Of a stretch of DNA of 64,000 bases, positions 37,844 through 61,063 are shown piece after piece. How positions within the stretch are numbered: the stretch's first letter is position 1; every line of letters begins with the position of its first letter. The stretch lies in sequence record NC_010811.2. One strand, 5' to 3'. Under the pieces are notes generated by a model. It had not been told where the DNA came from. It ran no database searches and was given only the letters and a program-made list of their open reading frames with translations. Both the position numbers and the translations under genes were made by a program.

Positions 37844-38374
37844 CTAATGTGCGTTGGGGTTATGCTGCGTGTGGTACGCAACGATTCCATTGGACCGCCA
37901 CATCTCGACGACATCCAAGGTGTCGTCAAACGCCATGAAGATTTGCTTCGGGTCTAGCCCCAGCCGCATAACGCGATCCCACTTGTATTCGCGGTCAGGC
38001 ACACGATTGGGCTCTATGTAGTCCTTCGTGCGCATCAGCAACTGATGGTCGTGGATGTCGGCGCCCACCCACTGACGCAACTGGTCCAGCGTTTGCTGAC
38101 GATATCGCTTGTCGTCACGGCGCGACGTGATGAACAGCAGGTGGAACTGCGGATCGAAGTAGAAGGCACGGTACACGAAGACGCCCTGCGGAATGGGCAG
38201 GTCTTCGTGCACCCGGCTGAAGTACTTATCGTACTCGCCGCTGAAGTAATACTTGGCACGGCTGCTCGAGTCAACGAGGCAGCCGTCGATGTCGCAGATC
38301 ACATACTTCTTGTCACTGAACACCGGAATCTCCAGTTGATCAGCGAACTCGATGCTTGAGGTAAGGAAAGACAT
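37844..38374 (-). CDS. HAD-family phosphatase (polynucleotide kinase-phosphatase C-terminal-like)
   Basis: Motif I CDIDGCL, motif II ITSR, motif IV AFDD. Confidence 0.8.
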   Translation of the reverse strand: MSFLTSSIEFADQLEIPVFSDKKYVICDIDGCLVDSSSRAKYYFSGEYDKYFSRVHEDLPIPQGVFVYRAFYFDPQFHLLFITSRRDDKRYRQQTLDQLRQWVGADIHDHQLLMRTKDYIEPNRVPDREYKWDRVMRLGLDPKQIFMAFDDTLDVVEMWRSNGIVAYHTQHNPNAH

Positions 38375-39103: not shown

Positions 39104-40222
39104 TTAGAGAACTTGCGGAGGAACCGGCAGCTTGGCCTTCTCCGCCAGCTTTGCAGCACGACGATACAGCCAGTTCTTGCCAGCGAACAGCCAGTCGTTG
39201 CTGGTGTCGATCTCGTGGATGAACTCGTTGTCTTCGGTAGTCAGCACTTCCAGCGCTTCGTCGATCTTGCCTTCCTTGTACAGGTTGTAGGCATGGGCCA
39301 TGGGCGCAGCCACATAGCGGATGAACGGCACCTGATAGTGCTCCAGCGCCACTTGGCGATAGTTGTCCACCAGATGCGCGACTTCTTCGTCGAAGAGCGG
39401 ATCGTCCGACCCCATTTCCATCGGCGCTGCATTGCGCGACGCATACACGTCCGGTCCCTTGCGCAGCACAGGTTGCACACCATACGTGGTGTCCACGATG
39501 AAGCGCTTGGTGATGTCGAACTCCAGATACACGTGCAGATTGTTCGACACTTGGTAGTAGTGGCCGAGTGGCAGGCCACATTTCTCGGCGACGTATTCGT
39601 GCAGCATCGAGAAGTGCACGACGTTGGCGCCGTAGCAGCCCCAGATCATGTCGTTGCTGCGGTTGGTGACCGTCATGTTGAGCTTGCCCAACTGCGCGTC
39701 GAACATCACGCTCGTGTTGCACGGCAGGTCCTTCGACCCTTGGTTCAGCAGGTCGGATTCGCGCCGCACTGCCCACGAGTCCTCGCGGCTATAGAATTCT
39801 CGGCTAGCGTCCCACATCTGCAGAACGCAGCGGCGGCTTGCCGGGTTCTTCTTCAGCTCGTCGATGATGGCGTTCAGCTGATCGTAGCCGAAGTGCTGGC
39901 GCCAGCGGAAGCCGTAGGCACCATTCAGCGTGCTGCCGTCATCGGTGTATTCCAGCATCTGCTTGGCGTAGTACGACGCGAACTCCACGTCGTTGCGCCC
40001 GGCCAGCATCCACAAGGCTTCCATCAGGTGCAGGAACGGATTGGCATCACGCACTGCGTCGAACGACACGCGCTGGCGCGGATGCGTGTACACCGAAGTG
40101 ACCGGCGTTGGGAAGCGAATGACCGGACCGTTGCGGCTGTCCGTCTTCAGGCCAACGGTGCAGATGGTTTCCAGACCCGAGTACAGGCCCTGATCGGGAT
40201 TGACGACGTGTAGGACTTTCAT
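39104..40222 (-). CDS. Thymidylate-synthase-family dUMP hydroxymethylase
   Basis: SRNG, RDANPF, AYG.RWR, NPASRR, catalytic DLPCN, NRSNDMIWGCYGANVVHFS, SNNLHVY; Asn at the substrate-specificity position; start at ATG 40222. Confidence 0.8.
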   Translation of the reverse strand: MKVLHVVNPDQGLYSGLETICTVGLKTDSRNGPVIRFPTPVTSVYTHPRQRVSFDAVRDANPFLHLMEALWMLAGRNDVEFASYYAKQMLEYTDDGSTLNGAYGFRWRQHFGYDQLNAIIDELKKNPASRRCVLQMWDASREFYSREDSWAVRRESDLLNQGSKDLPCNTSVMFDAQLGKLNMTVTNRSNDMIWGCYGANVVHFSMLHEYVAEKCGLPLGHYYQVSNNLHVYLEFDITKRFIVDTTYGVQPVLRKGPDVYASRNAAPMEMGSDDPLFDEEVAHLVDNYRQVALEHYQVPFIRYVAAPMAHAYNLYKEGKIDEALEVLTTEDNEFIHEIDTSNDWLFAGKNWLYRRAAKLAEKAKLPVPPQVL

Positions 40223-40257
40223 GGTTTGGGTTGTTTGGTTGCGTTGTACACTAGGCT

Positions 40258-40265
40258 TATTTACT
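40258..40265 (-). promoter_or_regulatory. AGTAAATA motif upstream of the dUMP hydroxymethylase
   Basis: 35 nt upstream of the ATG, in a short intergenic gap. Confidence 0.5.
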
Positions 40266-41274
40266 AGCCGCCGTTGTAACGATTCTTCATCCGGCTGGTG
40301 TCGCCATCCAGAATAGACCGCACCATCTTGCTCGTCTCGCAATGGCAATTGCTGTAGTTGGGCATGGAAATGGTGGCAAAGCCGGTCCACGGGTCTTCAG
40401 TCCAATACTTAGCGGGCACTTTGGCCTTGACCGCAGCGTTCACCAGATCACGCGTGCGGATCATCGGCTCATTCAACTTGTCGCCCTTGTACACCGCCTG
40501 CATGTGGCCATTCAGCAGCCAGTTCATGCCCTTGGTGGTGCCGGGACCAGGACTGGTGAACGTGTTGAGGTCAGGGGCGCGGCCCAACCACTTCTTGCTG
40601 TAGGACAGATCGACCAGCACTTGATTGGACATGAACGCGCCCCAGCCATGGAACGACGTGAGCGCCGCCAGACTGTCCACCATCGTAGTTTTGAAGACGT
40701 GTCGCACTTCCTTGCGTCGTTCCCAAAGCGGAGCCAGCCCAACAAATGGGATGTACTCGGCCTTCGAGCCTTCGCGCTTCGGATAGCGTGGCGGGAACAC
40801 CGAGTTGACGATGTATGCGCCGGTGATCAGCTTGTTGCCAGCTTCCTTGTAGCGAACGAGCGACTGGTAGACACGTTCTGTGTTCCAGGTTTTCACAGGC
40901 CACACGCCGTCGTCCATCAGCCGCTGCAGCGTTGGAGGCCAGTTGATGAGACGTGCCGCGCACAGCATGAACCACAGATCCGGATGGTCTTCGTACGGCT
41001 TGACGATATTGTCCACGATCCACGTGGTGCCGGGGTCCAGCTCACGATAGATGTTGGTGAACTTGGAAGCGCGCAGTACCGGGTCCGTGGTCCATGGCTT
41101 GGGCAAACCCTTCTGCCGCTTCAGGAAGATCTTGTGGCGCTCGATGATGAAGTCGGCCATGGCGTCCACGCGCTCTTCTTCCGTGCGAAGAACGCGCGGA
41201 TCGAACAAGAACTTGGCAGGCGCCTCTTCCGCCGACGCAAACAACTGCCCTTGACGCGCATCACGCTTTGCCAT
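40264..41274 (-). CDS. 5-hmdU DNA kinase family protein (aGPT-Pplase clade 1 helical domain)
   Basis: FIIERHKIF..WTTDPVL..KFTNIYRELDPGT, RLINW and SPGPGTTKG motifs; adjacent to the hydroxymethylase; start at ATG 41274. Confidence 0.75.
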   Translation of the reverse strand: MAKRDARQGQLFASAEEAPAKFLFDPRVLRTEEERVDAMADFIIERHKIFLKRQKGLPKPWTTDPVLRASKFTNIYRELDPGTTWIVDNIVKPYEDHPDLWFMLCAARLINWPPTLQRLMDDGVWPVKTWNTERVYQSLVRYKEAGNKLITGAYIVNSVFPPRYPKREGSKAEYIPFVGLAPLWERRKEVRHVFKTTMVDSLAALTSFHGWGAFMSNQVLVDLSYSKKWLGRAPDLNTFTSPGPGTTKGMNWLLNGHMQAVYKGDKLNEPMIRTRDLVNAAVKAKVPAKYWTEDPWTGFATISMPNYSNCHCETSKMVRSILDGDTSRMKNRYNGG

Positions 41275-42088
41275 TCTGCTTCTCCAGTTGACGTTCAGCG
41301 GCCTCGGCACGATGGCGCCAGTACATGCACTGCTGACCGAGAGTGAAATTCCGCGGGTCCAGTTCCGCATTGTAGTGCGACAGTCCGGCGGCGCCAATGG
41401 CCATCGCATCTACGATATCTGCGTGCACGGTAAGTGCGGGCAGCACGCCTTCCATCTTGTAGCCGAACAGGTGGAAGTCGCGTTGGTAGATGTGATTCAC
41501 AAGCTGAAGCGTGTTGCGCGACAGATCGTCCATCGTAAGGCGGCGCCCGGTGTCGTACTTGGTCTGGTCCTTCGAGTGGCCCAGCCCTTCGAGCGAAGCA
41601 TCAAGGCCCAGTCGCTGACGAACATACGCCCAATCCGCCGCCAGATTCTCGTAGCGGCCGATGTAGGACGCGAACAGCTCGTTGTTCTTGTAGAAGAAGT
41701 AGTGCTGCGGACAGAAGTGGGTGTAGCGCCAGTCGAAACGCACGTTGGACGGGGTGAGATTGCGCGCAGCCCACTCGTTGAAGTCGGTGTCCGGGTCCAG
41801 CGCATGCTGGCGCTTGTGCTCGGCCCAAGCGCTGAACAGACGGTCGTAGGGGTTGCGCACAAACCCGAACTTGAAGAAGTTGCGGAACGTACGCTCAGGC
41901 CACACCGCCGGAATGTCGCCAACGCACACGTGGAACAGTTCAACCACACGCTCCAGCGCAGGCACGTATTCCTGATACGCGAGGCGATGGGGGTTGTCGT
42001 CGTATGCGAACAGCTGACGACGAATGCTGGTCCCTGCGACCTTCGGGTTGTGCAGGAACATGAAGCCGCGTTGGTTATTGATAATCAT
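41261..42088 (-). CDS. PAPS-dependent sulfotransferase (Sulfotransfer_2 type)
   Basis: 5'-PSB motif HNPKVAGTS, 3'-PB motif FVRNPYDRLFSAW, HFCPQ, IGRYENLAADW. Confidence 0.85.
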   Translation of the reverse strand: MIINNQRGFMFLHNPKVAGTSIRRQLFAYDDNPHRLAYQEYVPALERVVELFHVCVGDIPAVWPERTFRNFFKFGFVRNPYDRLFSAWAEHKRQHALDPDTDFNEWAARNLTPSNVRFDWRYTHFCPQHYFFYKNNELFASYIGRYENLAADWAYVRQRLGLDASLEGLGHSKDQTKYDTGRRLTMDDLSRNTLQLVNHIYQRDFHLFGYKMEGVLPALTVHADIVDAMAIGAAGLSHYNAELDPRNFTLGQQCMYWRHRAEAAERQLEKQNGKA

Positions 42089-42983
42089 TGAGCAGGTCTC
42101 GGAGGTATTGTTTGTCACGACCTTGGAACGCGAGCTCTGCGGTCAGCAGCTTGCGGCCCTTGGCCTTGAACAGTTCGTAACGGGGAGCGTCAAGGAACAG
42201 GCTGGGCGCGCTCATAAAGTCCACGCGCAGGAACGATGCGACGTGCTGCGCCTGCTTGCCTCGACGGATGAGTCCAGGGAACATCACCATCTGGCGCAGG
42301 AACGAATCCCACACCTGCTTTACTTTACGTTCGCGCCCGGCACCCGACTTGTCGGCAGGGTCGAACGTGGTGTTCCACAGCAGACCGTAGTCCACGACCG
42401 ACGTATGGCCATTGCAAAGCACTGCCAGATTGTGGACGGTGTCAATGCCCCACAGGTCACGCGTAGCGCCGCGGTCAATCACATTGAGCAGCACATCTAC
42501 GTCGTAGCCTGCAACGTTCGTGCACTTGTGATTGATGCGCTGGGCACCCCATCGCGCCATCACGTTCTTGTGCATGAAGTAGGGACCGGCGCCCACTAGC
42601 GAATTGCCAGCCGCGAACAGACGGGGCGCAGTCTTGAGGAACCAGCGATCAGCAGCCGTGCGGTCCTTGGTGGCACCAACGAACGACCCATCTTTCTGGC
42701 GACCGTAGAACAGCAGGTCGTCCTCAATCACCATCGCCCAGCGTCCGCCCTGCTTCTGATGATGTGCGTACACACCATATCGCTTGTTGGGCAGCAGCGT
42801 GTCGTTTGGCGTGGGAAGGAAGTCCACGTGCTTGGCGTAGGGCTGACGCTTGTGTTCACGCAGCTCGTCCTTCGGACACACAACAGTCACGTGCTGCAGG
42901 ACAGCGGGCGATAGGTAGGACAGCGTCTTCTGCCGTCCCAGTCGCCCCTTGGTCAGCAGGTAGATGTGATATCGCTTATCCAT
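42075..42983 (-). CDS. GT-A fold glycosyltransferase (TET-associated/GREB1-like), copy 1
   Basis: IYLLTKGR, VVCPKDE, VIEDDL (DxD-like motif). Confidence 0.65.
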   Translation of the reverse strand: MDKRYHIYLLTKGRLGRQKTLSYLSPAVLQHVTVVCPKDELREHKRQPYAKHVDFLPTPNDTLLPNKRYGVYAHHQKQGGRWAMVIEDDLLFYGRQKDGSFVGATKDRTAADRWFLKTAPRLFAAGNSLVGAGPYFMHKNVMARWGAQRINHKCTNVAGYDVDVLLNVIDRGATRDLWGIDTVHNLAVLCNGHTSVVDYGLLWNTTFDPADKSGAGRERKVKQVWDSFLRQMVMFPGLIRRGKQAQHVASFLRVDFMSAPSLFLDAPRYELFKAKGRKLLTAELAFQGRDKQYLRDLLNDYQ

Positions 42984-43750
42984 TACACGAGTCCGCCGAT
43001 CTTAGCGGCGCCCCTCCAGCTAATCCGAGTGTTGGAATCCGGATGTTGGGCTGAAGGCGGCTTCTCCTTGACTACATCCGGGTGTAGCTTGATCAGCTTC
43101 TGCAGCGCCTTCGCCGCCATCTCGCGAGTGCGTTCACCTTGCAAGCCTCCAGCGGCGTCTGCCTTACGCTGGCCGACAGCCATGTCGTAGGTCACTGCTA
43201 TGCGAACACCGGCCTTCAGCAGTTGAAGCGTGTAGTCCACATCCTCGTAGGGGAAGATGCGATTCCACTTGATGGTCTTAACCGCCTTCTTGTCCATACC
43301 GAAGACGAAGCCCAGATGGAAATTCTCCTTGATACCGCCTTTGGGTGCGAACGCCTTGGTGCCGAAACCAACGCAGCGATAGTCACAGCACAGCTTGGGC
43401 AGCGTCTTGGTCCAGAAGCGGTAGGTGGCGTCGCGTGCGGTGCTGGCCACGACATGCTTCTGCTGTTCTGGGTCGAACGCATACAGATACAGGTCGTCGT
43501 CCATCATGAAGGTGAAGCGATGCGGCGACTGCAGCATGATCCACTCGCGCTTGGCGCCCAACGTCTTGATGTTGTTGGGCTGTGCCAGCACGTTGACTCG
43601 CGGATAGTTCTTGCGCAGGGCTTTCACCTCGTCCGCGGGACACACTAGGGTCACGTGCTGATGCATGCCCTTTGGCAACCGCTCCACCGTCAACTGATTG
43701 TCGACCCGGCCGCGTGTTGGTATGTACAGATGATAGTCGATCTTAGACAT
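42983..43750 (-). CDS. GT-A fold glycosyltransferase (TET-associated/GREB1-like), copy 2
   Basis: LYIPTRGR, LGAKREWI, MMDDDL, YEDVDYTLQLL, GGLQ motifs. Confidence 0.75.
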   Translation of the reverse strand: MSKIDYHLYIPTRGRVDNQLTVERLPKGMHQHVTLVCPADEVKALRKNYPRVNVLAQPNNIKTLGAKREWIMLQSPHRFTFMMDDDLYLYAFDPEQQKHVVASTARDATYRFWTKTLPKLCCDYRCVGFGTKAFAPKGGIKENFHLGFVFGMDKKAVKTIKWNRIFPYEDVDYTLQLLKAGVRIAVTYDMAVGQRKADAAGGLQGERTREMAAKALQKLIKLHPDVVKEKPPSAQHPDSNTRISWRGAAKIGGLV

Positions 43751-44465
43751 GATCGGTCTTCAGATAGGCTTCCAGTTCTTCGGGAGTGCCAAGGCAATGG
43801 AACGAGTCACGCGGCACCGGCACATTCAGCACAAGATTGTTGGTCACAATCAAGTGGTTGAGCAAGTCGCTCATGTAGATTTCTTTGGCGATCGACTTGC
43901 GAAGCAGATGGCTTGCGGCCTCTGCCGCCGCGTATCCAGAAGAGAACCAGTAGACGCCGCATCCGCTGTACGTGGGAGTCGGTGCCGTGATGGTCCGTTC
44001 GTGGATATGCGTGACGAAGTAGCCATCGGTGTGCACTGCGCTGAAGTGGCGTGCAGGCTCTTCGTTCAGGAACGTGAGCATTGCGGCGGTGGCCTTGGAT
44101 TCAGCCGCAGGACGCAGGTACGCCAGAAGATCGATCTTGGCAAACGAATCACAGTCCAAGAACAGGACGGGCGCTGCCAGATCAATAGTCGGCATCTTCA
44201 CCAGAGCGTGCAACGCCGAATGCGCAGGGCCGCGCAGCGTTTGGCACGTGCTGAGGAAGCGCAGGCCGGAAGTTCCACGCGGCAGATGACGAACAGCTTC
44301 ACCGCTGAAGATGAAGTTCACGTCCTCGGTCTTCAGTCCGTATTCGGCCAGCACATGCTCGTACATTGGGACGCCGTGTACCGGGATCATTGGCTTGGCT
44401 TGACGGTAGCCAGCAGCCGTGAAGCGGGAACCAAGTCCCGCAGCCAACATGATGATTTGGGTCAT
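43743..44465 (-). CDS. Sugar-phosphate nucleotidyltransferase (BcbG-like)
   Basis: MLAAGLGSRF..KPMI, LRGPAHS, LDCD, GVYWFSSG, LGTPEEL; start at ATG 44465. Confidence 0.8.
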   Translation of the reverse strand: MTQIIMLAAGLGSRFTAAGYRQAKPMIPVHGVPMYEHVLAEYGLKTEDVNFIFSGEAVRHLPRGTSGLRFLSTCQTLRGPAHSALHALVKMPTIDLAAPVLFLDCDSFAKIDLLAYLRPAAESKATAAMLTFLNEEPARHFSAVHTDGYFVTHIHERTITAPTPTYSGCGVYWFSSGYAAAEAASHLLRKSIAKEIYMSDLLNHLIVTNNLVLNVPVPRDSFHCLGTPEELEAYLKTDHV

Positions 44466-44467
44466 TT

Positions 44468-45901
44468 CTATTGGATCTGGTTCAGAACTTTGCGGGCCAG
44501 TTCGACGAATCGCAACTGGCGCTGTTTGTCGTCGCTGTGGAGCGGAAGCATGCTGATGAACAACAGTCCCGTCACCGCCCACAACTCGTTGGACGAAATG
44601 CCGAAGCGCTGAGCGCCGTAACGCAAGATGGGGTCTGCCAAACCCTCCCATTCAGTGGGCAGTGGCTGCTTTGCGACTGCGTGGTCGTAGCCGATCACGG
44701 AGTGCAGAAGCTTTGCCAGCTCATAGCGAACGTCGCCATACAGCGAGGGGCGGTCCTTAGCGTCCAGCCCCCGTGGATCGAACACCAAGACACGATCCGT
44801 ACGCTGGTCCAACATGATGTTGGAGAAGCACAGGTCACCATGCATGATGGTTCGATGGTGTACCTTTGGATTCACGTTCATCGCGAACAACTGAGCCATG
44901 CCATGAAGGTCGGCCAACGGCAGATGTACGTTGCCCTCCTCTAACAGATCCAGGCGGCCCCACGTCTTCGTGACCGCAAGCTGATAGAAGTCGTTGACAT
45001 GCGCCCCCTGACACGCTTGATGCGCGTCTTCCACCCAGCACAGCGTCTGATGAAGAACGTGGGTCCACGCACGGTCGTCCAACTTGCCATACACATAGAG
45101 CTCAGCCAGCGTTGGCAGCGGCAGATACTCCATGGTGTACTCGCCGTCGTCATAGTGGACGATGCGCGGCACGTAGGTGGACAGCTTGCGTGGCAAACCC
45201 AGGAACCACTCGCGCTCTGCGTTCACCTTCTTCGTGTTGGCGCTGCGCTTGGTCAGCAGGTGGCCATCGTTGGTCAACCCGTTGAAGTGACGAGTGGTGC
45301 GGGACAGGAACTCGCGCTTGGAACTGAAGTACGTAGACAGATGCCCAAAGTCCAGCCAGTGCTCGTCGATCGAAACGTTGGGAAGGCATCCCGCCATGTG
45401 ACGCACAGCCGATTTCACCGTCTCGTAACTGTCGAGCGTGAACGTCAGCTCACTCAGGCGACACGCAAAGTACCCGGCGAACACGCTGTCCTTGTCCAGG
45501 AACTGCCAGTGGGCAGACGTACCCAAGGGATGAGAAACTACGCCCACCGACGGTTCTTTCAACCACTTGGTGACCAGCGTATCGCCCCACAGAACATGCA
45601 CACAGACGTCCGGCGCGTTCTCTTGAGCACCGATCAGGCGCAGCGCGCGACGCAACTGATAGGGCAGCGACTGATCTTCCGCCGACGGGAAGAAGTAGAC
45701 GTTGCCTCCCACGTATGGAACAGACGACATCTCGGGCCACGTCACGTAGATGTGGTGGAAGTTGTCGCCTGCTGCGTCCAACTGCAGGTCGAGCAGCGTG
45801 CGCCCGCCCACCGGCACACGGGCTGCAGGAATGGCCCCGAACAGGAACTGAAGCTCCTGATTGCATGGAGCCGATGACATGATGAGCAGGACGTTGCGCA
45901 T
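44468..45901 (-). CDS. Nucleotidyltransferase-like / sugar kinase (APH/choline-kinase fold) fusion, BcbE-like
   Basis: N-terminal LLIMSS..ELQFLFGAIP, WLDFGHLSTY; kinase motifs HGDLCFSN, FDPRG and GDVRYELAKL. Confidence 0.75.
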   Translation of the reverse strand: MRNVLLIMSSAPCNQELQFLFGAIPAARVPVGGRTLLDLQLDAAGDNFHHIYVTWPEMSSVPYVGGNVYFFPSAEDQSLPYQLRRALRLIGAQENAPDVCVHVLWGDTLVTKWLKEPSVGVVSHPLGTSAHWQFLDKDSVFAGYFACRLSELTFTLDSYETVKSAVRHMAGCLPNVSIDEHWLDFGHLSTYFSSKREFLSRTTRHFNGLTNDGHLLTKRSANTKKVNAEREWFLGLPRKLSTYVPRIVHYDDGEYTMEYLPLPTLAELYVYGKLDDRAWTHVLHQTLCWVEDAHQACQGAHVNDFYQLAVTKTWGRLDLLEEGNVHLPLADLHGMAQLFAMNVNPKVHHRTIMHGDLCFSNIMLDQRTDRVLVFDPRGLDAKDRPSLYGDVRYELAKLLHSVIGYDHAVAKQPLPTEWEGLADPILRYGAQRFGISSNELWAVTGLLFISMLPLHSDDKQRQLRFVELARKVLNQIQ

Positions 45902-46801
45902 TTACTTTGCCTTCTTCTGTTTCTGACTACTGGCGAATGCCTTCTCCCAGTAGACGATCACTTCCTTGCGGTTGATGGACCCCTTGTACTCCTTGTCCAC
46001 CACCTTGACGAACGGGTCGTGGATGGACGCCAGCTTGACCGCGGCACGGTCTGATCCCTTTACCGTACGCTCTTCGCTACAGCCGCCGTCCGAGCCGTAG
46101 TCGAGTGGATTCACAACGAAGTTGGTGAGGATCAGATTGGGGTAGCCCAGTCGCAGCAGGTGCAGCGTCACGTTGAAGTCCTCGCGGAATTTCACTTCGT
46201 CGAATCGGATGCCGTGCTTGAGCAGTGTGCGCCGATTGTGGCCGATTGCGTGCATGGCGCGTCCCACCATCTTGAAGTCGCCGCGCACATAGTTGTTCAT
46301 CAGGCGGCTGGCGATGCACGTGTGGACTACGCCCTTGTTCACCATCTGATCCTTGATGAAGTCCCAGCGACGCATCTTCTGCACGTCAGGGAACGGCTCC
46401 TTGAACAGGAAGGTGATGCCCTTGGCCTTTGCCGCGTCCGTCTGCACCCACTTGCCGCTCTTGGCACCCTGCCATTCGCGGTGCTCTTTGTTGCAGCGGC
46501 GGAAGAAGTACATGTCGTCGTCCAACTGGAAGACGTTGTCGGCGCGAACGTTCTCGATGATCCACTGGCGCTTCTTTGCGATACAGTCGACCGTGGGATC
46601 GTCCACCGCCCACACCAGCTCGTGCTTGTGCTTCTTGCGCAGGGCCTTCGCTTCATCCCAATCGCTGGCCAGCAACAGCGTTCGCTCGCGCAGTTCGGCA
46701 GGCAGCTCACGCAGCGTAACCTGACGATCGACGCGCCGATGCGTTGGGATAACCACTTGGAAGTCTTTGTCCGCCACCGGCGGGCGTCGATGTTGTGCCA
46801 T
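45902..46801 (-). CDS. GT-A fold glycosyltransferase (TET-associated/GREB1-like), copy 3
   Basis: VVIPTHRR, IAKKRQWI, QLDDDM, FREDFNVTLHLL, GGCS; start at ATG 46801. Confidence 0.75.
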   Translation of the reverse strand: MAQHRRPPVADKDFQVVIPTHRRVDRQVTLRELPAELRERTLLLASDWDEAKALRKKHKHELVWAVDDPTVDCIAKKRQWIIENVRADNVFQLDDDMYFFRRCNKEHREWQGAKSGKWVQTDAAKAKGITFLFKEPFPDVQKMRRWDFIKDQMVNKGVVHTCIASRLMNNYVRGDFKMVGRAMHAIGHNRRTLLKHGIRFDEVKFREDFNVTLHLLRLGYPNLILTNFVVNPLDYGSDGGCSEERTVKGSDRAAVKLASIHDPFVKVVDKEYKGSINRKEVIVYWEKAFASSQKQKKAK

Positions 46802-46802
46802 G

Positions 46803-47498
46803 TCAGTAGGTGAGTGTGAAGATGGAACGACCGTCGGCATCGGTAGTGAACGCCGAGTAGCCACGGACCAAAACGTTAAACTTGGTCACGTTATGCTCGA
46901 TGGTGGTGCCCGGCGTCATGTGCCCGCGCAGATCGAAGTGATCGACCAGCACTTCGTTCATGGTGCCAGCTTCGATGATACGCCACATATTGGTCAGGCC
47001 ATCGCTGTGCGTGTTGTAGCGGATGTAGTACGACTGATGGCCAGCCGTCACCTGATTGACGATGTCCTGCGCCACACGCTCGAAGTCTTCGGGCGTTTGC
47101 AGATATTCGTCCACCGAGTACTGGAAGGCACCAACACCCGGCTTCTGGTAGAGCTTGTTGGTGTCCGCGAATCGGCCTTCCTGGATGGTGTTCATCCACA
47201 CACTGAACACGTCGCTCACTTCCTTGAACTGGGTGAAGAATGCGCCGCGTGTTGTGCGCGTCGGACACACGAAGTCCACGATCACCCACGAGCCCTGCTC
47301 CATGACACAGCGTGCCAGTCGGCCCAGCGTCTTGGCCTGGATCACACGATCCTTCTCTTCGAACGACAAATGCGTCGTGATGTTGGCGCGCGCCCAGTCC
47401 GCGTTGAAGTGAATGGCGCTCAGACGCTTCTGAATGGCGAGGGCCAGCGTGGTCTTGCCACTGCCGGGCAAGCCTTGAATCATGATGGTCTTGGACAT
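46803..47498 (-). CDS. Adenylylsulfate (APS) kinase-like P-loop kinase with extra C-terminal domain
   Basis: IQGLPGSGKTTLA, FNADWAR, DR..Q, VDFVCP, RFADTNKLYQKP resemble CysC-like kinases; true substrate not established. Confidence 0.6.
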   Translation of the reverse strand: MSKTIMIQGLPGSGKTTLALAIQKRLSAIHFNADWARANITTHLSFEEKDRVIQAKTLGRLARCVMEQGSWVIVDFVCPTRTTRGAFFTQFKEVSDVFSVWMNTIQEGRFADTNKLYQKPGVGAFQYSVDEYLQTPEDFERVAQDIVNQVTAGHQSYYIRYNTHSDGLTNMWRIIEAGTMNEVLVDHFDLRGHMTPGTTIEHNVTKFNVLVRGYSAFTTDADGRSIFTLTY

Positions 47499-59971: not shown

Positions 59972-61063
59972 TTACTTGTGATGTGCGAGAAACGACAGCC
60001 AATCGCGCTCCGATCGCTTGTCGTAGCCGCGCAACCCCATGGCGTTGAGGTTCAGTCGCGGGAAGCGTCGCTTCATACACAGCGCACGATCCATGACCGC
60101 GGCAATGCTGTCAGACGACGTGGGATCCGCTTGGTACAGCATGTTGAGCCACGTGATCTCGCGGCTGCCGATCGTAGGCACGCCCAACACCACGGCGTCG
60201 GCCGCTACGATGTTGAACGTTTCCGAGAACGACACCTGCGTCACCAAGTCCATGGACGCCACAAGCTCTTTGAACTTGGCGTGCACCATCCACGGATGTT
60301 CGACCAGCTCGTGTTGCGGGTAGTGCTTGAACATCAGGCGCAGATTCTTGAGGATCTGATCGCCGTTCATCTCGATGCGACCGCCGTTGATGTGGAAGCG
60401 CAGGCGACGATTGAGCCGGGCTGCCAGCTTCAGCGCGCCAATCGCCTGTTCCATGTGGTTCTTCAACGGACGTACGGCACCAAAGCACCCGATGTCCAGC
60501 GTGTCGCAGTGGTCCGGCTTCATCTCTCCGTCAACGAGATGCGTTGTCGGATAGTAGTTGGGCAGGTATGCGACCTTGGAGGCGATGTGTTCTGGCGTCC
60601 ACGAGGGGTTCGCCATCTGCACTAGATGCAGGGTTTCCTCGTACATGCGCGGGCTATTGGCCGACATGACGACATTGGGACGCTGCACGTACTTCAGCAT
60701 CCAGTCGAAGGCGATCCCTTCCTGGGCTAGGAATGGAGTCTCCGAGTGATTGCGGATCACATACTTGATCTTGGGGTTGACCGACAGCAGCTCGTCGAAT
60801 TTCTCCGGCACAACCCAGAAGGCTTCAACGATCACTACCTCAGCCTGGAAGGCCATCGCTTCCCGGTAGATCGTCGAATTGTCTTGCACGTGAACCAGCT
60901 TCACTGGCACGCCGTGTTGCATCAGCATGTCGACAACCATGCGAGCGCTATTGAACAGGCCGCTGCTCAGCGGCTTCTTGCCGTCGCTGTAGCACCAGCT
61001 ATTGATGTCGTTGTAGTCGCTATCGCGATACTTGAGGACGAAGAGGGTGCGTGGGTACGTCAT
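59972..61063 (-). CDS. GT-B fold (GT4-like) glycosyltransferase
   Basis: FGAVRPLKNH and SFSETFNIVAADAVVLGVPTIGS motifs. Confidence 0.75.
   Translation of the reverse strand: MTYPRTLFVLKYRDSDYNDINSWCYSDGKKPLSSGLFNSARMVVDMLMQHGVPVKLVHVQDNSTIYREAMAFQAEVVIVEAFWVVPEKFDELLSVNPKIKYVIRNHSETPFLAQEGIAFDWMLKYVQRPNVVMSANSPRMYEETLHLVQMANPSWTPEHIASKVAYLPNYYPTTHLVDGEMKPDHCDTLDIGCFGAVRPLKNHMEQAIGALKLAARLNRRLRFHINGGRIEMNGDQILKNLRLMFKHYPQHELVEHPWMVHAKFKELVASMDLVTQVSFSETFNIVAADAVVLGVPTIGSREITWLNMLYQADPTSSDSIAAVMDRALCMKRRFPRLNLNAMGLRGYDKRSERDWLSFLAHHK

Follow-up and report, generated by a model that had tools for sequence, protein, structure and literature searches.

The window, i.e., the whole stretch of DNA analysed here (64,000 nt), is 100% identical to Ralstonia phage phiRSL1 (NC_010811.2 / AB366653.2; hereafter RSL1), a jumbo myovirus of 231,255 bp, with window position 1 corresponding to genome position 124,001. 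Between positions 42075 and 46801 its minus strand encodes three proteins which the initial annotation regarded as divergent paralogues of the TET-associated glycosyltransferase (TAGT) type, gathered in one operon that lacks a TET enzyme. These are ORF233 (42075..42983, 302 aa), ORF234 (42983..43750, 255 aa) and ORF237 (45902..46840), referred to below as TAGT1, TAGT2 and TAGT3; ORF237 comprises 299 aa when read from the ATG at 46801 and 312 aa from the RefSeq start at 46840. RefSeq labels all three genes beta-glucosyl-HMC-alpha-glucosyltransferase, and UniProt lists ORF234 as a TAGT-domain protein, so the family call itself is not new. On balance, we lean towards a reading in which the three anciently diverged TAGTs, translationally coupled in one operon, would hypermodify the thymidine of the phage's own DNA in a stepwise manner. 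The family, fold, conservation and gene context of these proteins were established in this work, and every chemical step proposed below is inferred from homology and gene context.

The Pfam TAGT family (PF20691, curated cut-off 27.5 bits) matched ORF234 with the full profile at 187.5 bits and ORF237 in the N-terminal half only at 45.7 bits. ORF233 proved borderline, scoring 26.2 bits as a protein and 27.1 bits, or 27.5 bits with its neighbours, in a six-frame scan; its orthologues carry precomputed PF20691 matches. All three were assigned to phrog_842 (beta-glucosyl-HMC-alpha-glucosyltransferase), with E-values of 6e-44 for ORF233, 2e-54 for ORF234 and 1.6e-63 for ORF237. Their pairwise identity is 18–28%. 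The motifs noted in the initial annotation are present as described: an N-terminal motif (YLLTKGR in ORF233, YIPTRGR in ORF234, VIPTHRR in ORF237), a central DD motif (EDDL, DDDL and DDDM in the same order) and the ED..TL.LL motif, which is found only in ORF234 and ORF237, the equivalent segment of ORF233 reading IDTVHNLAVL. ORF233 thus has EDD and I-D where the family pattern is DDD and E-D, and this change is kept clade-wide: in 7/7 members of the TAGT1 clade, Ile or Leu stands where the ED motif has Glu, and Asn where TL has Thr. Such a replacement fits an altered acceptor or donor. Across 53 homologues of all clades, R14, K67, R68, D88, D89, D181, G213, G214 and R219 (ORF233 numbering) show little or no variation; because these R/KR/DD/D/GG/R positions are retained, all three TAGTs look catalytically competent and are probably active.

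AlphaFold2 models built on an alignment of 53–54 rows reached mean confidence (pLDDT) values of 94.9 for ORF233 and 95.1 for ORF237, and showed the GT-A glycosyltransferase fold. Among solved structures, the ORF237 model was best matched by TarS and TarP, which are teichoic-acid GT-A enzymes, and by the nucleoside glycosyltransferase AvpGT (E ~5e-6, template modelling score, TM, ~0.45), and a GREB1-like protein appeared among its matches to Swiss-Prot models (AFDB). TarS and TarP are likewise reported as the top solved matches of proven phage DNA GT-A enzymes (bioRxiv 10.1101/2023.12.21.572611). The top AFDB match of the phage enzymes in that study is the kinetoplastid base J glucosyltransferase (JGT; Pyle et al., bioRxiv 10.1101/2023.12.21.572611); JGT was absent from the matches of our own fold searches, whose AFDB part covered Swiss-Prot models only. 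The ORF233 model matched that of RSL1 ORF234 (Foldseek E 1.5e-21, TM 0.70/0.82), several TET-Associated Glycosyltransferase domain proteins in BFVD (E range 1e-10 to 1e-21) and the beta-glucosyl-HMC-alpha-glucosyltransferase of Klebsiella phage PKO111 (E 1.5e-10). Owing to these strong matches to viral TAGT models, ORF233 is placed in the TAGT family despite its sub-threshold Pfam score. Altogether, the similarity exceeds by far what chance would produce, and membership of the three proteins in the TAGT family is nearly certain, as the initial annotation had proposed.

The paralogues differ in how widely they are distributed. Protein searches returned six clusters for TAGT1 (among 5.8 billion), 27 for TAGT3 and 35 for TAGT2. 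In a maximum-likelihood tree of 86–91 TAGT sequences, each paralogue falls within its own well-supported clade (SH-aLRT 98 each), the TAGT3 clade comprising 24 orthologues and the TAGT2 clade 36. The TAGT1 and TAGT2 clades are sisters (SH-aLRT 99), with a very long stem leading to the fast-evolving TAGT1, and TAGT3 belongs to the part of the tree containing the solitary TAGTs associated with thymidylate synthase (TS)-like genes; the longest branch belongs to the TAGT of phage T6. The paralogues are therefore ancient in their divergence, each with an orthologue clade of its own. An operon containing all three clades is kept in three uncultivated viral genomes (one of 217.6 kb and 100% complete, one of 177.8 kb, and a fragment of 57 kb). 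Identity to RSL1 in these genomes is 70–78% for TAGT2, 72%, 58% and only 27% (the last in locus L008; related loci are given L numbers throughout) for TAGT1, and 64%, 64% and ~32% (the last in L009) for TAGT3. Among 50,697 cultured-phage records, tblastn with each TAGT recovered RSL1 itself and a few relatives at 22–28% identity, leaving RSL1 a singleton in that collection; the Sarumanvirus phages and Matilda, its closest relatives according to the literature, were not among the matches. An activated-sludge metagenome (72% of sampled words) and, less completely, soil metagenomes contain sequence nearly identical to window positions 42075-46801, and RSL1-like phages with this operon hence exist beyond the original Japanese isolate. 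Wider scans of IMG/VR with clade-specific alignments yielded one further informative locus, L036; an alignment of all clades was too diverse to serve as a query.

A TAGT is expected near an enzyme that makes 5-hydroxymethylpyrimidine, and in RSL1 this association is provided by a TS-type homologue in the same operon, with no Tet_JBP gene. ORF230 (39104..40348, minus strand) matched the TS family (PF00303, 78.7 bits; phrog_5131, E 2e-139) and, aligned along its whole length, shares 45% identity (E 1e-95) with the dUMP hydroxymethyltransferase of AN14, a Pseudomonas phage belonging to the M6 species. The DNA of this species carries bases derived from 5-hydroxymethyldeoxyuridine (5-hmdU) (PMC5889632). 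Identity to the dCMP hydroxymethylase of T6 (gp42) is 26% over 140 aa only; ORF230 and the M6-type enzyme share WGxYGAN(A/V)VHFS, where T6 gp42 has the Asp-containing FRNDYAW. In an independently published tree, the RSL1 enzyme groups with one clade of dUMP hydroxymethyltransferases from Mesyanzhinovviridae (PMC11946847). This homology makes ORF230 a candidate dUMP hydroxymethyltransferase. Its annotated start is probably too far upstream, as the homologues all begin at Met43 (MKVLHVV), near window position 40222; a start at Met43 abolishes the 85-nt overlap between ORF230 and ORF231. In locus L020, an intein (PF14890) splits the TS-like hydroxymethylase gene between two PF00303 halves (L020:16862-18985), and the same contig contains a Hint domain in its DNA polymerase region.

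ORF231 (40264..41310, minus strand) matched PF18723 (HMUDK_hel) at 135 bits and is 37% identical to the clade-1 aGPT-Pplase of M6/AN14, the neighbour of the hydroxymethylase in M6-like phages. It was matched in 402 phage records, mostly from ViI-like and M6-like phages with 5-hmdU. An ORF231-like gene accompanies the TS-like gene and the TAGT in nearly every locus, including L013, L015, L020-L022, L010 and L012. The Pfam name invites the assignment of ORF231 as a kinase, which we rejected, as no P-loop was seen by eye and the closest annotated relatives are clade-1 aGPT-Pplases. Taken together, the homologies of ORF230 and ORF231 make hydroxymethyluracil (hmU), the base proposed in the initial annotation, a well-supported candidate for the modified base.

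The six-frame scan of the complete 231 kb genome revealed exactly three TAGT matches and one thymidylate-synthase homologue, ORF230, and no Tet_JBP (PF12851) match at E<=1, in agreement with the reported lack of TET. That this lack is an anomaly was not borne out. A TS-type pyrimidine hydroxymethylase lies in the operon and other phages with paired TAGT and TS-like genes, such as T6, PhiJL001, MW202897, LuckyBarnes and those represented by many metagenomic loci, are also without TET, so its absence is unsurprising. The neighbourhoods of phage GT-A genes are about evenly split between 5mYOX and ThyS (Pyle et al., bioRxiv 10.1101/2023.12.21.572611), and 288/753 phage genomes have TAGT homologues but no alpha- or beta-glucosyltransferase (PMC13216743).

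The genes form one dense minus-strand block, partly overlapping, transcribed in the order ORF238 to ORF228. ORF238 (46803..47498) encodes an APS (adenosine 5'-phosphosulfate)-kinase-like P-loop kinase and is followed by TAGT3, by ORF236 (44468..45901), in which an N-terminal nucleotidyltransferase (NTase)-like half is fused to an APH-fold kinase, and by ORF235 (43743..44465), a predicted sugar-1-phosphate nucleotidylyltransferase. TAGT2 and TAGT1 come next, and then the sulfotransferase gene ORF232 (41261..42118), which overlaps the 3' end of ORF233, and ORF231 and ORF230. ORF229, without a family match, lies between ORF230 and ORF228, and the HAD phosphatase gene ORF228 (37844..38374) occupies the final position of the conserved block. 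Scanning for promoters and terminators gave counts no higher than background. The only strongly basic proteins of the operon are TAGT1, TAGT2, TAGT3 and ORF231 (isoelectric point, pI, 9.7–9.8, 9.7 for ORF231; net charge +16 to +17.5). The sulfotransferase stands at pI 7.2, and acidic or neutral values were obtained for the hydroxymethylase, the nucleotidyltransferases, the kinase, the APS-kinase-like protein and the HAD phosphatase. This split fits four proteins acting on DNA and a remainder acting on small molecules. Net charge was also considered as a criterion for telling an initiating from an extending enzyme and was discarded, the three TAGTs being about equally basic. Gene context and charge point to the TAGTs as enzymes that would transfer sugar onto a hydroxymethylpyrimidine in DNA, or onto a sugar already attached to it.

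The same glycosyltransferases and sulfotransferase might instead modify a protein of the virion, a glycan of the host envelope or a small molecule, their neighbourhood being coincidental. The TAGT fold does resemble GT2-type enzymes acting on teichoic acid, protein and lipid at TM ~0.45, its eukaryotic relative GREB1 glycosylates protein (PMC7968844), the usual substrates of Sulfotransfer_2 enzymes are glycans or lipo-oligosaccharides, and ~65% of phage glycosyltransferase contigs are without a base-modification neighbour (Pyle et al., bioRxiv 10.1101/2023.12.21.572611). We nonetheless judge a target other than DNA very unlikely, since the closest structural relatives are viral TAGT proteins, the pI of the TAGTs is high, unlike the rest of the operon, and the tight linkage to TS-like and ORF231-like genes is kept in distant phages whatever their other gene content. 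There, the core of TS-like, ORF231-like and TAGT genes recurs beside genes for DNA polymerase, primase, dUTPase, dCMP deaminase and HD-phosphatase. That the target is DNA, in its hmU-derived form, is in our view likely.

The remaining genes of the block are best understood as supplying donors and sulfate. ORF235 matched PF12804 (43 bits) and PF00483 (31 bits), with weak NCBIfam matches to GlmU, RmlA and MurU types, and an NTP_transferase gene is recurrent in most related loci. ORF236 scored 23.4 bits against the APH family (PF01636, cut-off 23.2) over residues 224-400 and matched phrog_24015 (E 2e-228); it has orthologues in L006, L008, L009, L020 and L023 and is probably an anomeric sugar kinase. 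ORF228 matched PF25109 (HAD_PNKP) at 45.8 bits, with orthologues in L006, L028-L030 and L033. ORF232 was assigned to the sulfotransferases by PF03567 (76.8 bits) and phrog_3347 (E 2e-70). The match of ORF238 to the APS kinase family (PF01583, 57.1 bits, cut-off 21.1) is confined to the first ~125 of its 231 residues, and its NCBIfam apsK score of 52.6 bits is under the equivalog cut-off of 138.7; a probable role is the supply of 3'-phosphoadenosine-5'-phosphosulfate (PAPS). Many beta-proteobacteria assimilate sulfate via APS reductase and may make little PAPS, which would explain a phage-borne APS kinase. ORF238 was examined as the missing 5-hmdU kinase and rejected as the main reading: it has no similarity to the M6/ViI kinase, its relatives in cultured phages are not kinases of the M6-like or ViI-like kind, and the APS-kinase-like gene tracks the sulfotransferase, not ORF231, across TAGT loci.

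This missing kinase bears on a second alternative, in which the APH-fold kinase and/or ORF231 would turn 5-hmdU into a phosphorylated or linker-bearing base that is then glycosylated by the TAGTs. Comparable linker-phosphate-sugar adducts occur in SP-15, YerA41 and Carin-5, and oligosaccharide thymidines with phosphate are known (PMC12686479). Moreover, almost all loci pair the TAGT and TS-like gene with an ORF231-type gene, an APH-like kinase recurs as well, and RP13 has an aGPT-Pplase but no detectable kinase of 5-hmdU DNA (5-HMUDK; PMC13697223). Against this, RSL1 has no M6-type 5-HMUDK: a search of the whole RSL1 genome gave no match to the gp54 homologue of the M6 species, the P-loop 5-HMUDK, at E<=1, and no P-loop 5-hmdU kinase is annotated in the related TAGT loci. 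M6 gp55, the clade-1 homologue, is not needed for group transfer (PMC8989533), the operon holds no partner genes of the pyridoxal phosphate (PLP) or radical-SAM type, and a kinase beside NTases is the usual pair for salvage of nucleoside diphosphate (NDP)-sugars. A phosphorylated or linker-bearing acceptor is therefore considered unlikely.

Genes were classified in 13 first-batch loci and in L030, L032, L033 and L036. A TAGT3-type or basal TAGT is present in 13/13 first-batch loci and in L036, and is not found in L030, L032 and L033. It is the sole glycosyltransferase detected in PhiJL001 and MW202897, whose whole-genome scans gave no GT1 or GT2 Pfam matches, and, going by called genes of the 10 kb flanks, in L015 and L022. 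In the loci examined, the TAGT2 type is always accompanied by a TAGT3-type or basal TAGT (RSL1, L006, L008, L009, L017, L020 and L021). The TAGT1 type occurs in RSL1, L006, L008 (weak), L009, L013 and L036, in 6/6 cases with a sulfotransferase and an APS-kinase-like gene, usually adjacent; the eight TAGT loci in which those two genes are missing all lack it. L030, L032 and L033 combine a sulfotransferase with a fourth TAGT clade, which falls within the TAGT1/TAGT2 superclade, a GT-B-like gene and a UDP-galactopyranose mutase (PF03275, 164–180 bits). Members of this superclade are never the sole glycosyltransferase in the loci examined; the partner is a TAGT3-type or basal TAGT, or a GT-B-like gene.

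This nested pattern bears on the two options left by the initial annotation, namely that the three copies act in sequence to build a chain, or that they differ in specificity for sequence context or acceptor (hmU versus phospho-hmU). In one form of the second option, each TAGT would glycosylate 5-hmdU directly, differing in anomeric linkage, donor or sequence context, and the product would be a mixture of monosaccharides. The same catalytic residues and equal basicity of all three TAGTs are compatible with such parallel action, two nucleotidylyltransferase domains in the operon could mean more than one donor, and the alpha- and beta-glucosyltransferases of T4 offer a precedent of two DNA glycosyltransferases for one base (PMC13216743). 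However, the phyletic pattern is nested, with members of the TAGT1/TAGT2 superclade never alone, the only characterised TAGT, that of T2/T6, has a sugar as its acceptor (PMC13216743), and the clade-wide loss of the ED-motif Glu in TAGT1 fits a changed acceptor. We consider parallel action quite unlikely. Sequential chain building is the option favoured by the nested clade distribution and by two precedents: the T6 TAGT adds a second glucose to glucosyl-hydroxymethylcytosine (PMC13216743), and two-glycosyltransferase clusters of phages make tri-hexose-5mC in a fixed order (bioRxiv 10.1101/2023.12.21.572611). We give it about an even chance of being correct, the exact order of the steps being less certain.

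The variant loci deserve a brief description. Their cassettes (L030:8844-13046, L033:8799-14487 and L032:1789-5880) also hold an APS-kinase-like gene and adjoin ORF231-like and TS-like genes, and their gene content suggests a galactofuranose-containing, sulfated version of the modification. Given the fourth-clade TAGT and GT-B-like gene in these loci, the sugar part of the cassette is modular. At the other extreme, L013:11080-12311 and L015:11015-12162 are simpler clusters, in which a TAGT3-type gene is followed by two conserved small ORFs and then an NTase. The first small ORF (217–249 aa) gave faint APH/RIO kinase-like matches in L015 and the second (~160 aa) faint HAD matches in L013; with the NTase, the pair looks like a minimal sugar-activation set. 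In RSL1 itself, a 363 aa ORF at window 59972-61063 (minus strand), directly downstream of the DNA polymerase I gene, showed sub-threshold GT-B matches (Glyco_trans_1_4, 21 bits; Glycos_transf_1, 19.8 bits; GT4-conflict, 16.4 bits) and matched no PHROG family. Perhaps it is a fourth RSL1 glycosyltransferase; comparison with the GT-B-like genes found in L030, L032 and L033 showed no relationship, and it was dismissed as their counterpart.

A stepwise sulfated oligosaccharide on 5-hmdU DNA is thus favoured on account of the nested TAGT clade pattern and the linkage to the sulfotransferase and APS-kinase-like genes. ORF230 would make 5-hydroxymethyl-dUMP, which would replace some or all of the dT during replication. 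NDP-sugar donors would be provided by the putative sugar kinase ORF236 and the nucleotidylyltransferase ORF235, possibly with the HAD phosphatase ORF228. After replication, the TAGT3-type enzyme, as the candidate initiator, would add the first sugar to the 5-hydroxymethyl group or a derivative of it, and the chain would be extended by TAGT2, the candidate extender, and then by TAGT1. ORF232 may finally sulfate the TAGT1-associated sugar with PAPS supplied by ORF238. The predicted product is a glycan, bulky and negatively charged, that would lie in the major groove and shield the DNA from host nucleases. More tentatively, and with less than even odds, the thymine-derived bases of RSL1-like phages may bear a sulfated oligosaccharide, built by a modular cassette resembling those for O-antigen and served by a PAPS source of the phage. 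In such a cassette, a DNA-initiating TAGT would be followed by exchangeable extenders, i.e., TAGT paralogues in RSL1, and GT-B-like enzymes with UDP-galactopyranose mutase in L030, L032 and L033.

Several observations weigh against this pathway. L030, L032 and L033 bear a sulfotransferase without a TAGT1-type or TAGT3-type gene, from which it follows that the TAGT3-type gene is not universal and that TAGT1 and sulfation are not obligatorily linked. The loci represent few independent lineages, perhaps four to six, RSL1, L006, L008 and L009 being close kin and L013 and L036 perhaps two more, and the co-occurrence counts are for this reason suggestive, not statistical. The flank-based evidence from L015 and L022 also covers less of the genome than that from PhiJL001 and MW202897. 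As regards the enzymes, the APH-fold kinase ORF236 could act on hmU instead of a sugar, and M6 gp55, the clade-1 homologue of ORF231, was dispensable in vitro (PMC8989533). The PDB and NCBIfam matches of ORF235, ORF236 and ORF232 gave nothing specific as to the identity of the sugar. The searchable literature yielded no chemical analysis of RSL1 DNA. Finally, ordinary methods sufficed to sequence RSL1, and near-identical copies have been assembled from metagenomes of the ordinary kind; the modification, if present, therefore does not block polymerases as in YerA41 or RP13.

Comparison with known systems shows which parts of the RSL1 operon have a counterpart. The beta-glucosyl-HMC-alpha-glucosyltransferase of T2/T6 shares with the RSL1 enzymes the PF20691 domain, the GT-A fold, a TS-family pyrimidine hydroxymethylase as neighbour and a TET-less genome. 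The T6 TAGT extends a sugar already present on the DNA base (PMC13216743), and the TAGT1 model matches a T-even-type homologue. In contrast to T6, where the base is 5-hydroxymethylcytosine (5hmC) and a single TAGT extends a chain started by the GT-B alpha-glucosyltransferase, RSL1 combines three TAGTs with a hydroxymethylase of the hmU type, has no clear GT-B partner in its operon, and adds genes for sugar activation and sulfation. The GT-A clusters associated with 5mYOX/TET resemble RSL1 in their R...DDD...EDY/F motifs and in TarP as the top solved match, and those with two glycosyltransferases act in a fixed sequence, assembling di- and trisaccharides on the base (bioRxiv 10.1101/2023.12.21.572611). 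They produce 5hmC after replication through a methyltransferase and TET, whereas RSL1 would take the pre-replicative TS-type route, probably to hmU, and has three paralogues of the same family as well as the APS-kinase/sulfotransferase pair, the latter unmentioned in that study (bioRxiv 10.1101/2023.12.21.572611).

The thymidine hypermodification pathways of M6, ViI, PaMx11, phiW-14 and SP10 (PMC5889632, PMC8989533) share with RSL1 the neighbourhood of dUMP hydroxymethyltransferase (45%) and clade-1 aGPT-Pplase (37%) and the post-replicative elaboration of 5-hmdU. They attach amino acids or amines by means of a P-loop 5-HMUDK, a clade-2 aGPT-Pplase and PLP or radical-SAM enzymes, while RSL1 is without those enzymes and has glycosyltransferases instead. 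SP-15, YerA41 and Carin-5 (PMC12686479, PMC13697223) combine a sugar-bearing thymidine with an anionic group, there a phosphate, and have gene blocks with an NDP-sugar pyrophosphorylase and several glycosyltransferases. They differ by other glycosyltransferase families, a dihydroxypentyl-type linker, a DNA polymerase fused to uracil-DNA glycosylase (UDG) and DNA that resists ordinary sequencing; RSL1 has none of those features, and its anion would be sulfate. JGT is a GT-A enzyme that glucosylates 5-hmU in DNA, but it is eukaryotic, receives its hmU from JBP dioxygenases and adds a single glucose.

Stepwise DNA glycans made by several glycosyltransferases are established for 5hmC (T6; Pyle et al.), and sugar-bearing thymidines are known in SP-15-like phages. 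The searchable literature, which did not include the 2013 paper of Iyer et al., held no three-TAGT cluster of the hmU type, no linkage of such a cluster to a sulfotransferase/APS-kinase pair and no sulfated DNA base, nor did we find there an account of RSL1 DNA modification or of a phage sulfotransferase/APS-kinase DNA pathway. If the proposed pathway is correct, it would take DNA glycosylation beyond single cytosine-linked sugars, to a thymine glycan made in several steps. It would also add a sulfate group, to our knowledge unreported on natural DNA, and thereby constitute the first sulfate-bearing natural DNA modification. The nested clade distribution provides a testable order, namely TAGT3, then TAGT2, then TAGT1 with the sulfotransferase, and the small set of enzymes could be reconstituted on 5-hmdU DNA.

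Beyond RSL1, the core of TS-like, clade 1-like aGPT-Pplase, NTase and TAGT genes is present in many unrelated uncultivated phages, and this class of thymidine hypermodification is for that reason probably widespread, though chemically uncharacterised. Its existence would bear on the evasion of restriction and CRISPR, on defences that use glycosylases and on DNA-labelling tools. Since RSL1 is a biocontrol candidate against bacterial wilt, the nuclease resistance that such a modification may confer would be of practical interest as well.

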